A stretch of 64,000 nucleotides of DNA, taken from positions 248,001-312,000 of the forward strand of contig JBBPEB010000025.1 in the NCBI GenBank assembly GCA_039096225.1. Direction: 5' to 3'. A program made the translations under genes and the position numbers. The notes beneath the pieces were generated by a model. It saw only the letters and a program-made list of their open reading frames with translations, was not told the origin of the DNA and made no database searches. Below, one piece after another: positions 29,154 through 33,795 of this stretch. How positions within the stretch are numbered: the first letter of the stretch is position 1; the number at the start of each line of letters is the position of its first letter. The DNA is from Blastocystis sp. Blastoise (lineage: Eukaryota; Protista; Bigyra: Opalinata).

Positions 29154-29493
29154 TTATTTTAAATGAATATTTTTATCAAACATCTGCTCAAAATCAACAG
29201 CCTATATATATGTGTTATATATATTATGCGTGTTATATTATATTATATTATTTTATATTATATATATAATATATATATTATTATATATATACAGAAATGA
29301 GTGTGTCAAATAAAAAGGGACCTGCATTCGCTCTCTTTATATCCATTTGTGAATATCCTCTTACTATATGTATATATAATATATATATTATTCTACATAA
29401 AAAAACTACCATATATATATATATATATATATACAAGGATTCACAAGTCCGAGAAATTTGGTCATATCTTTTAATTCTGTAAATACTTGATTC

Positions 29494-29538
<45 letters not shown>

Positions 29539-29573
29539 TTGTTGTTATATAATGATTATGATGATATGAATGA

Positions 29574-29605
<32 letters not shown>

Positions 29606-32151
29606 CAACTGGATGTTCAGAATCTCTCATGAGATCACTAATATCGCTTATAGATATATATCCATCTTCATCATAATCTAGAATATTAAACCAAAATGGA
29701 AAACTAAAACTAGTCATCTTATCCTATATATATATATATAATTAAAATAATAAATAAAATAAAATAATATATTGTAATCTTTAATAAATATAAATAATCA
29801 GAGATATATAGAATAAAAATAAAACTAAGAAATATACTGCTAAAAAAAGATGAAGAAGAAAATATCCATCAAAAGTTAGCCAGTTCTTTCTGTTACGATC
29901 CAAACTGGCTTCTTTATCTTGTCCAAAAGATATATCACATTCTGATTGGTCTGGGATAGAATACAATTTCTTTAGAATAGAACACATATGTTGGTGAAGT
30001 GAGTTTTGTTCTGTGATCCCGAGAAATCTGTTAATCCTGCAGAGTACACGATGAATAATAGTAGAATTAAGGTATTGTTTAATTTGATTATGTATATGGC
30101 AATAAGGAAGAGCTATTTGAAATAATGGAATCGATGTATATATAGATAAGTGAGGAACATAGGAATAGAGAGAAGAAATAAATGAATTCTGTGATGAATA
30201 TAAGAATGAAGAAGATAAATATAATACTGACTGTGGAAATAAATATATATATTCAGATGATAATAGAGATGAAGAAGGAGACATAGTATTATTAATAGAT
30301 GAAGGAGATATATTATTGTTAATAGAAGAAGGAGACATATTATTATCAATAGAAGAAGAAGACATATTATTATTAATAGAAATATTATTCGTATTAAGAA
30401 TAATATTATTATTGATCTGATTATGAAGTGGATATATATATGTAGCTTTCTTTAATGTAGATTTAAAAGAAGAAGAAGAAATAGAATTAGTATATAATGT
30501 TGGCTAGAGATGTGTATATATTATTAGATATAGTATAACATATATATTATTATATATATAGTATAATATAAATAATATATTTAAGAATATGTATAATAAA
30601 AATAATGTTGATAATAACAATAATAATATATATATACAAGGAATGTATATCGAATACAGTTTTGATAAAGCTCAAAGTATCGTTTAATATACTGTGATAT
30701 AGAGAGAGGAGAGAAAGGAGCACTTTCAGGAAGGGATGAATATGTAAATAATGACAGTATTAATGACTATATGATATAGTATGAACTCAATGAATATTAT
30801 TATATGTATATATAGATAATAAACAAAAATAATACATATGAATATAGATATATATACACAATTTGATTTTTTCCATTCTCGTTGAAGAATTTGATTCCAT
30901 TGTGTTCCATTACAGTAAGCGAATAATAATAATATAATACATCGTATATATACTAAAAGAAATCGTTTGTTTACTTCTTCTTCAGAAAGAACCGCGGGAG
31001 TTTTAGAGATATATAGAGAAGTGGAAGAAGTTGGGAGAATTGAATATATATATGAATGTGATGAATCCCCGTGATTATTTATTTTATTATTAAAAGAATG
31101 ATTATTTTGAATTGAATAATGTTCCACTGACGCATCCAGATAAAATCCCTCCAGGAAATCAACATTAATATCGAAATCTTTTCGAATTCTTTGAATAAGA
31201 TCCGGTTTCTCCCATAGATATGTATAAAACATAAAAAATAAATTCCAAAAAGAAACTGTGTTCTGATTATATATAGATATACATAGAAATAGTCTATTTT
31301 GAAGTGTTTTTCTCTTTAAATACGATGAATAATAATCTAAGAATGTTTCAGAATGAATTAAAGAAGAATTTTCACATAGAAGAGGGAAATACGAAGAATG
31401 ATTGGGTGGAGATGTAGACTGAATAGAGCTGAATATGGCTGATTTGGAGGGATTTGCTATAGGGATAGATAGAATACCATTTGGTGAATAAGTGAACATT
31501 GTATGAGATGTAGTTATATTCGCGGGGGAAACATCATTATAGGTTGTCGATGAGTCTATATTTATTATAATATATAAATAAATATGTTAATAATAAATAT
31601 GTTAATAATAAGTATATTAATAATAAATATGTTAATAATAAATATATTAGTAATAAATATATTAATAATAAATATGTGAATAAAAAGTATGTTAATACTA
31701 AATATATAAATAGAATACTGGTCATGACTAAATGAGTATATTGTTTGTAATTATTGAATAAGGAGTGACGCAAGGGACAGGGGAACTGCAAAGTCTATTG
31801 TTTATTATATATATAGATATATAGAATTGATAGAAAGTATGTATATAGAATAGTAATAGTATTATATATATATATATATATATATATACTTGAAGAATCA
31901 TAGTATAAAGTCGTTGTCCTTTCATGGTATGTATATTTATATTCTGACGATGCAATATCATCGATAAACTGGAGTCAATTTCCGCGGTTATTGGCTATAT
32001 AAAATAGTCTATACTATATTTATATATACCTTATTTATATATAATAATGAATGAGGTATAATGTTATAAGAACACAATTCCTCAATTAATTTCTTGTTAT
32101 TCCCGCGGGAATATACTTTCTTTAGTTGAGAAGAACTATTATCTTGTGCCT

Positions 32152-32214
<63 letters not shown>

Positions 32215-32451
32215 GAATAGTTGAGTGGTTCACTTTTTATATTAATATCTATATATATATAATAATATAGATTAGTATATATATTAATAGCATATAAATA
32301 TATATCGTAACATTTAGTAATATATATATACATTTCTTTTGAATTTGTGACTTCATCTTATTATATAAATGAAGGTATAATTCGCTATCGGATAAGACCT
32401 TATGAATACGAATTCGAAGAAGAGACAATGTTATTGGCTTTATGCTATATA

Positions 32452-32484
<33 letters not shown>

Positions 32485-33795
32485 TGATATATATTGATAT
32501 ATATATACATATATTCACATGCTCCTGCATTCATACAATTAGCAATCTAGTTATTAATAATAGTAATATGTATAATAAATAAAATAAAAAAAATAAGTAT
32601 AATAAATAAAATAAAAAAATAAGTATAATAAATAAAATAAAAAAATAAGTATAATAAATAAAATAAAAAAAATAAGTATAATAAATAAAATAATAAACAC
32701 TATAAACATAATAAACGTACAATATCAGCCGAGTTGCTTGAGGATATAATAATCACGGGAATCATGAATAAATAAGGATCTCTCTTAATTGTTAATATGA
32801 ATTCTTCTCCCATCATTCCTGTCATTATATGATCCACTAAAATCATATTATACTATATATATATATATAGAATAAGAATAATATTCTGACTGTCTATATC
32901 TATTAAATAACATAATATTTCAATATATAAATAATAAAAAAAATTTAATGTACTAAATAATTAACTTATTACGTATTATATATATATACTGGAATGGGTT
33001 CATTAGTATATTTATATCTATATAATAATTGAAGTGCTTCTTCTCCACTGGAACACAAATCAGCGTCAATATTCAGTTTTTGTAACATCATTCTATTATA
33101 TATATAATATATATATAATATATACAATCTATTATAATAAATAAGGTATTCAAGAAAATAGAATTATTTATATATAATATATATAATCTATTATAATAAA
33201 GTATTCTTGAGAATAAAGTTATATATATAATATATATATAGACTTTAACATTTTTAGAATAGCAATACTATCATCGACACATAAAATTCGAATTGTATTA
33301 TTCTCTTTTTTTCTATTTATATATTTAGTTATAGACAATTCTTTAATACTATAAATAGAATACCTTTCATTTGTTTCAATAAGACATCTGATTAAGGCAT
33401 CTTCAGTGATTGGCAGTGTTAAGATTAAATAATCATAAATATTATTATAGGAATGAAATAATTCTTCATCTGACTATTCATAAAGTAAATTTTTATCATA
33501 AATAACTATTATTTAAACATACTTTGTTGCATACAACTATTGTCTTTATCTTCTTAACAGTTGGATCAGTTGCTATTCGTGTTAGAAAATGCAACCATTC
33601 CACTTCATATCGATTTCCATATATACATAGTATATTCGCAGTTTCTTCCCTTAAGTACTTGATAGCATCTGCAGCGTACATATAAGAAAGTACTTCATAA
33701 TCCTTAGCTTTAAAATGAGAACTGATATGAGGGAATAAATGAGAAGGGAATCCACAGAAAATAACAATTTTTCTATTTTGAATGTTTATTTCCAT
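29154..33795 (-). CDS. Response-regulator receiver x2 fused to a PP2A B''(PR72/PPP2R3)-like EF-hand regulatory subunit; 18 exons
   Basis: Receiver 2: IRILCVDDSIAILKML...SSGEEAL...YNMILVDHIMTGMMG...IPVIIISS...AGACEYIIKP. B''-like blocks: LQFPCPLRHSLF, FLLVYIRCIILLLFAYCN, PFSPLSISQYIKRYFEL, LNSTIIHRVL, DKMTSFSFPFWFNILDYDEDGYISISD, QMDIKRANAGPFLFDTLIS..DFEQ. All 17 introns are GT-AG and phase-compatible. Confidence 0.8.

Follow-up and report, generated by a model that had tools for sequence, protein, structure and literature searches.

A candidate lineage-specific response regulator with an EF-hand tail in Blastocystis sp. Blastoise

Introduction

Eukaryotic response regulators with non-DNA-binding outputs include RegA of Dictyostelium, in which a receiver is joined to a cAMP phosphodiesterase, and yeast Ssk1, and bacterial response regulators of the RsbY type carry a receiver fused to the catalytic domain of a PP2C phosphatase. 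Here we analyze a predicted gene of Blastocystis sp. Blastoise that lies on the minus strand at 33795-29154 of a 64,000-nucleotide (nt) window of genomic DNA (contig JBBPEB010000025.1, positions 248,001 to 312,000; all coordinates of the gene are positions in this window) and whose product would join a canonical receiver to an EF-hand tail, possibly derived from a B'' regulatory subunit of protein phosphatase 2A (PP2A). As in RegA and Ssk1, a single canonical receiver is fused to a signaling output in what would be a soluble protein, and a hybrid histidine kinase is found in this genome too. Unlike in those systems, the output is an EF-hand tail, neither an enzyme nor a known adaptor, an extra N-terminal alpha/beta domain precedes the receiver, and an exon-wise search gave no HPt match in this genome. 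RsbY-type proteins share with the proposed arrangement the idea that a Ser/Thr phosphatase activity is gated through Asp phosphorylation, but there is no homology and the Blastocystis gene has at most the remnant of a regulatory subunit.

The described proteins closest to the tail are the B'' subunits of PP2A (PR72/PR70, PPP2R3; TON2/FASS in plants). In the PR70 holoenzyme the second EF-hand (EF2), which assembly requires, rests on the A scaffold, a helix after EF2 contacts the catalytic subunit, and an N-terminal Ile125/Phe128 motif latches on HEAT repeat 1 (PMC3698643). The tail resembles these subunits in having an EF-hand preceded by DK...S..(Y/F)WF and, about 45 residues after it, D(L/I)K(R)......F(F/L)DT(F/L)(I/F), with order and spacing alike. 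The protein differs from them in that EF-hand_13, the EF1 block, the IPxF latch, and RDPF are not detectable, in its ~250 residues of low-complexity inserts, and in its N-terminal receiver, which is unknown among B'' subunits; where the normal B'' of the same genome scores 46-101 bits, this gene scores below zero.

Results

The region 33795-29154 holds one intron-rich protein-coding gene with a predicted product of 987 amino acids (aa). Rebuilt from the coordinates, 18 exons and 17 GT-AG introns yield a single open reading frame (ORF) of 2964 nt (987 codons plus TAA) without an in-frame stop, and intron phases are compatible at every junction. This reproduces the structure given in an earlier sequence-only annotation (the original prediction), and the motifs quoted there (ILCVDD, LVDHIM, IIISS, IKP, and DYDEDGYISISD) were all found in the model translation. 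In silico support for the fusion of a receiver to an EF-hand tail is good. The predicted protein is divided as follows.

33364..33795, minus strand: N-terminal domain, family not assigned (exons 1-2, residues 1-128), predicted (beta-alpha)4 pattern, acidic pocket absent
32332..33312, minus strand: canonical receiver domain (exons 3-7, residues 128-280)
29838..32248, minus strand: lineage-specific region, low-complexity-rich (Ser/Asn/Ile) (exons 8-14, residues 280-890)
29607..29723, minus strand: canonical EF-hand exon (exon 15, residues 891-929)
29154..29492, minus strand: C-terminal helices (exons 16-18, residues 930-987)

The predicted product of exons 3-7 is a genuine two-component receiver in which the phospho-acceptor pocket is complete; the key residues are encoded at the following positions.

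33275-33270, minus strand: acidic pair D141/D142
32834-32832, minus strand: phospho-acceptor D192, within LVDHIMTGMMG
32744-32742, minus strand: S222
32440-32435, minus strand: K244-P245

All five catalytic residues are kept (the acidic pair where beta1 ends, Asp where beta3 ends, Ser at beta4, and Lys at beta5), at a spacing of 50/30/22 that is close to the 44/30/22 of CheY. Profile, PDB, and fold searches were made exon by exon, joining being used for the ORF check and residue numbering. Exon 5 alone matches Pfam Response_reg (PF00072) over profile positions 43-82 with 18.1 bits (E 0.003; cut-off 30.2 bits); the receiver is split over five exons, and the 44-residue piece in exon 5 cannot reach the Pfam gathering score. 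All of the PDB matches of this exon (21/21) come from receivers of response regulators and align at the phospho-acceptor. The claim that the second of two proposed receivers has all canonical residues is thus borne out, and D192 would be the site of phosphorylation.

The C-terminal tail was compared with a B'' core hidden Markov model (HMM) of 280 positions, built from B'' fragments of the protein collection, with 2120 open window segments as decoys, and with a B'' C-terminal exon alignment (A4) of post-EF2 exons from the genomic loci of six B'' fragments. Two features lie within it.

29678-29643, minus strand: EF-hand loop DYDEDGYISISD in exon 15, with D906 and D917 at loop positions 1 and 12, following DK...S..FWF as B'' EF2 does
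GLVNP and DIKRANAGPFLFDTLIS (29343-29293), minus strand: resemble B'' (M/L)D(L/M)(I/V)KP ... DLKxC....FFDTF

Exon 15 matches Pfam EF-hand_6 (22 bits, E 9e-5), in keeping with the earlier identification of its loop as an EF-hand; the hand is canonical and would be expected to bind Ca2+. In hhalign comparison with a B'' alignment (A3) it falls at EF2 (probability 84%, P 7e-6), on the B'' core HMM it scores 9.7 bits (E 0.058) at EF2 positions, over all 2120 decoys, and against the EF2 exon of the canonical B'' paralog it reaches z = 8. The preceding DK...S..FWF is of B'' type. The best PDB matches of the exon are calmodulins, not PR70, and because of these matches and the generic EF-hand fit exon 15 alone is no proof of B'' ancestry.

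Exon 17 (DIKRANAGPFLFDTLI) matches the center of the C-terminal B'' segment, in the expected columns of A4 (hhalign P 2.2e-4, probability 45%; the canonical Blastocystis B'' exon, as a control, gives P 4.8e-6), and with 7.6 bits on our own C-terminal HMM it is the top non-canonical segment of 2222. It has no Pfam EF-hand match, which together with its P value to B'' argues that the segment is not a generic EF-hand feature. Exons 15 and 17 are collinear with B'', the first loop Asp and D(L/I)K being 51 residues apart versus about 57 in B''. The full B'' segment reads (M/L)D(L/M)(I/V)KP...DLKxC....FFDTFxNLEK....RDPF; the gene has LVNP (in FLGLVNP) for (I/V)KP, and NLEK and RDPF do not occur in its C-terminal segment. 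By hand count, we take helix 439-446 of PR70 to lie on the (M/L)D(L/M)(I/V)KP stretch. Exons 16 and 18 are individually not significant against the B'' C-terminal HMM, and exon 16 is also below zero on the core HMM.

Of the ordered blocks that the original prediction had matched to PR72/PPP2R3 subunits, those in exons 9-14 are not significant; only exons 15 and 17 match B'' profiles. The blocks in exons 9-14 included the following.

32062-32042, minus strand: IIPHSLLY in exon 9, aligned to B'' in the original prediction
30965-30861, minus strand: RFLLVY...KKSN in exon 12, aligned to B'' in the original prediction

For the exon 12 tail, hhalign finds the expected B'' position, though at P 0.22, and the HMM score is -2.0 bits; exons 13 and 14 have no hhalign match to A3, and exons 12, 13, and 14 all score below zero on the B'' core HMM, under the decoys. 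No exon matches EF-hand_13 (PF17958) or P2R3B_EF-hand. All 15 sequences of a further B'' alignment, A1, carry the EF1 block FSYEHFYVIYCKFWELDxDHD in invariant form (19 columns); the candidate FSPLSISQYIKRYFELYQNCI keeps ~5/19 invariant residues, and exon 13 gives no profile match to the block. The sole candidate for the IPxF latch is IIPHSLLY, which has Ser at the Phe position and no profile support.

A six-frame genome search with EF-hand_13 found contig C24 only. The canonical B'' gene lies there at ~859400-861550, with one 54-residue exon scoring 55.7 bits on EF-hand_13 and with exons scoring 101.7, 46.6, 23.7, and 6.6 bits on the core HMM. Its EF2 loop is degenerate (DIYNHGYLDESV) and an insert of ~30 residues splits its conserved DLK...FFDTF region. 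Intron positions around EF2 are, by eye, not common to the two genes, which supports neither view of their relationship. Judged by its predicted translation, the whole protein is not a bona fide B'' subunit and falls outside B'' membership; the last ~100 residues of its tail are probably a remnant of a B'' paralog.

Evidence that the reading frames are under selection comes from a second, incomplete copy elsewhere in this genome. On contig C34 (~547476-550512, minus strand), a partial duplicate matches window 32648-29497, from intron 5 to intron 15, and comprises exons 6-15 only, at 87-100% exon identity. Trinucleotide repeats bound it on either side, stop codons interrupt it, and indels break the frame in exons 7, 12, 14, and 15. 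Exons 1-5 are not present in this copy, and exons 1-2 have no second copy in the genome. Between gene and copy, differences at codon positions 1/2/3 number 24/24/68, and the overall ratio of non-synonymous to synonymous differences (pN/pS) is 0.19; the excess at third positions and this low ratio indicate that the frames of the model, including those of the orphan middle region, are under purifying selection. Individual exons gave the following values, gene versus C34 copy.

Exon 12: pN/pS 0.09
Exon 13: pN/pS 0.05
Exon 14: pN/pS 0.39
Exon 15 (EF-hand): pN/pS 0, no non-synonymous change

The C34 copy is annotated at NCBI as hypothetical protein KAK8808536.1 (439 aa, Blastocystis sp. Blastoise), whose model shares the exon 11/12 and 13/14 junctions with the 18-exon model, takes the Met of exon 11 as its start, and lacks a receiver. 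We attribute this start to the absence of exons 1-5 from the C34 copy rather than to a gene boundary. KAK8808536.1 was also considered as an ortholog from another strain, which we reject, its locus lying on C34 of the same genome. Exon 12 of the gene holds an alternative GTAATG donor (window 30900-30858). The (TTA)n run that precedes it has lost 4 nt in the C34 copy, with a shift of frame, and by splicing at GTAATG the NCBI model returns to frame.

The exons of the model, all on the minus strand, are as follows.

33795-33523, minus strand: exon 1
33473-33364, minus strand: exon 2
33312-33244, minus strand: exon 3
33092-32990, minus strand: exon 4
32852-32721, minus strand: exon 5
32546-32509, minus strand: exon 6
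32444-32332, minus strand: exon 7
32248-32211, minus strand: exon 8
32149-32030, minus strand: exon 9
31994-31890, minus strand: exon 10
31794-31719, minus strand: exon 11
31555-30858, minus strand: exon 12
30766-30638, minus strand: exon 13
30503-29838, minus strand: exon 14
29723-29607, minus strand: exon 15
29492-29435, minus strand: exon 16
29363-29293, minus strand: exon 17
29201-29154, minus strand: exon 18

Minus-strand segments without a stop have a median length of 5 codons, with the 99th percentile at 82, whereas two exons of the gene stay open over 232 and 222 codons. Exon GC is 22-38%, with a mean of 29.4%, and intron GC 5-16%, with a mean of 10.4%, in a genome of 33.3 Mb in 34 contigs with ~23% GC. 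These long open exons and the contrast in GC between exons and introns argue that the ORF is not a chance construction. All 17 introns are 35-174 nt long, all acceptors are TAG, and donors are mostly GTATAT, with GTC once; that donor, GTCTAT of intron 3 (window 33243-33238), is the sole departure from a GTA start. Introns 5 and 11 (window 32720-32547 and 31718-31556) consist mostly of tandem AT-rich units of ~15-25 nt, and introns 8 and 15 are almost pure (TA)n or (ATT)n. In tortoise Blastocystis isolates the median intergenic length is 645-719 bp (Lind et al., PMC12129017); the model stands ~640-780 bp from its neighboring genes, near that median, and every gap inside it is far shorter. One probable RNA sequencing run of the organism contains 23% of sampled words and a poly-A gut metatranscriptome 5%; this hints at expression and says nothing on splicing.

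A six-frame search of the genome with Response_reg returned one other receiver, on contig C8 (~242000-243400), where a HATPase_c exon (E 1e-14) followed by Response_reg exons (E 3e-10) marks a hybrid histidine kinase; GC at this kinase is visibly above that of its surroundings. Six-frame searches with HisKA and Hpt found nothing, and such searches are insensitive with tiny exons, having missed the C8 kinase (HisKA) and the gene's own receiver (Response_reg). Blastocystis has lost many signal-transduction genes (PMC12129017). The presence of a His kinase, one of two things proposed for checking in the genome, is thus confirmed, whereas no HPt was found in the exon-wise search, itself a weak one.

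The N-terminal and middle regions match no described family in our searches. Exons 1-2 have no Pfam match at E <= 10 and no similarity to receivers in pairwise tests. An AlphaFold2 (AF2) model of exon 1 shows beta-alpha alternation at low confidence (predicted local distance difference test, pLDDT, 57), and Foldseek and VIA-align searches with this model returned generic alpha/beta folds only, nothing receiver-specific. The domain is like pseudo-receivers (CikA PsR, plant PRR/TOC1) in its predicted beta-alpha alternation and absent acidic pocket, and CikA PsR and Spo0F occur among weak Foldseek rows for the exon 1 model; it differs from them in that its sequence and fold matches are no better than to generic alpha/beta folds. 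The earlier description of a first, degenerate receiver-like domain holds for the missing acidic pocket but not for receiver identity, where Pfam, pairwise, and specific fold matches are all absent, and the label pseudo-receiver is unproven. Exons 8-14 have no Pfam match; phmmer against PDB gave nothing relevant for exons 12 and 14 (or 17), nor did an ESM Atlas search with the exon 14 tail, and the AF2 model of part of exon 12 (pLDDT 41) is unusable. The sole homolog of exon 12 found by phmmer among 1.84 billion representatives is the C34 copy of the same genome, a homolog search with KAK8808536.1 returned only itself, and a JGI metagenome scan gave no match.

Discussion

The reading that we favor, and which we hold to be somewhat better than an even bet, is that one gene encodes a lineage-specific response regulator with a Ca2+-sensitive, possibly B''-derived protein-interaction tail. 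Its product would comprise an N-terminal alpha/beta domain, a canonical receiver with a complete phospho-acceptor pocket, ~600 fast-evolving, low-complexity-rich residues that are still under selection, and a C-terminal module of ~100 residues with one canonical EF-hand and the helices that follow it. This module, most likely left over from a duplicated B'' subunit, would correspond to the EF2 region, which contacts the A scaffold in PR70, and to the next segment, which contacts the catalytic subunit, and the output would be the Ca2+-sensitive protein-interaction tail of a soluble signaling protein. We infer the B'' ancestry of the tail, which is plausible but has weak support, and any partner that it may have; binding to PP2A is speculative. 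That a B''-derived output still docks on the PP2A core, with His-Asp phosphorelay and Ca2+ converging on a Ser/Thr phosphatase holoenzyme, seems to us quite unlikely. In the original prediction of a gated phosphatase, then, a receiver and an EF-hand in one model and a hybrid kinase in the genome hold, whereas the likeness of the C-terminal half to a B'' subunit covers ~70 residues (EF2 and the segment after it) at modest statistics, and the phosphorelay-gated phosphatase is a hypothesis that goes beyond what the sequence shows.

Several results weigh against the favored reading. Exon 15 may be a generic EF-hand, given 22 bits on EF-hand_6 versus 9.7 bits on B'' and the calmodulins among its PDB matches, and the exon 17 match spans only 18 columns. 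No HPt or HisKA match was obtained in the six-frame search (insensitive for tiny exons). The splice junctions and the link between receiver and tail are predicted here from genomic sequence. Finally, there is no homolog outside this genome in searches that were made with single exons, the unrestricted one with exon 12 only, and with a length window that excludes full-length relatives of single exons.

A true receiver-B'' fusion would assemble with the A and C subunits of PP2A, and gating of the holoenzyme would be shared between Asp phosphorylation and Ca2+. We regard this as unlikely, even though exons 15 and 17 match exactly those elements of PR70 that contact the A scaffold and the C subunit (PMC3698643), FLGLVNP stands where B'' has (M/L)D(L/M)(I/V)KP, a hybrid kinase is present in the genome, and the EF-hand exon shows no non-synonymous change relative to the C34 copy. 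Such a protein is hard to reconcile with IPHS in place of the Ile125/Phe128 latch of PR70 (PMC3698643), the lack of a detectable EF-hand_13, the ~5/19 residues kept of the invariant EF1 block, scores for exons 12-14 under the decoys on the core HMM, and the retention of a normal B'' on C24. If, conversely, the receiver were an orphan outside any phosphorelay, serving as a constitutive scaffold or under control of small phosphodonors or of Ca2+ alone, the tail could be an unrelated EF-hand with a convergent or chance likeness to B''. The exon-wise search without HPt or HisKA matches, the C8 kinase's own receiver as the only other Response_reg match of the genome, the loss of signal-transduction genes in Blastocystis (PMC12129017), and the modest B'' statistics all speak for this decidedly improbable alternative; against it, five catalytic residues at exact spacing would be unusual for a pseudo-receiver, and exon 17 has P 2.2e-4 to B'' yet no EF-hand match.

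Very improbable, in our view, is that two neighboring genes were misjoined, one for a receiver protein (exons 1-8) and one for an EF-hand protein starting from an internal Met, for example that of exon 11. The only public model of a copy, KAK8808536.1, does start at this Met and has no receiver, and the junctions of the 18-exon model are genomic predictions, but the C34 copy without exons 1-5 explains a receiver-less model. Moreover, the 18 exons run without an in-frame stop, and the gaps between exons 7 and 12 (35-163 nt, GC 5-14%) are intron-like, against an intergenic median of 645-719 bp (PMC12129017).

A eukaryotic response regulator is a known kind of protein, and the unusual EF-hand output is what is new. 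The original prediction knew of no described receiver-B'' fusion, and our search of the available library likewise gave no paper joining a receiver domain, a PP2A regulatory subunit, and an EF-hand; to our knowledge, a His-Asp phosphorelay coupled directly to the PP2A holoenzyme has not been described in any organism. In gut protists, two-component signaling is seldom found and little understood. No eukaryote is commoner in the human gut than Blastocystis, although we found the gene only in a genome of the tortoise clade. A receiver with an intact pocket, a hybrid kinase, and a Ca2+-binding output may form a small testable module in an organism from which much signal transduction has been lost. 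Should the tail bind PP2A, His-Asp phosphorelay and PP2A would be directly linked for the first time; should it not, the gene would illustrate how a dismantled regulatory subunit can be put to new use as an output domain.

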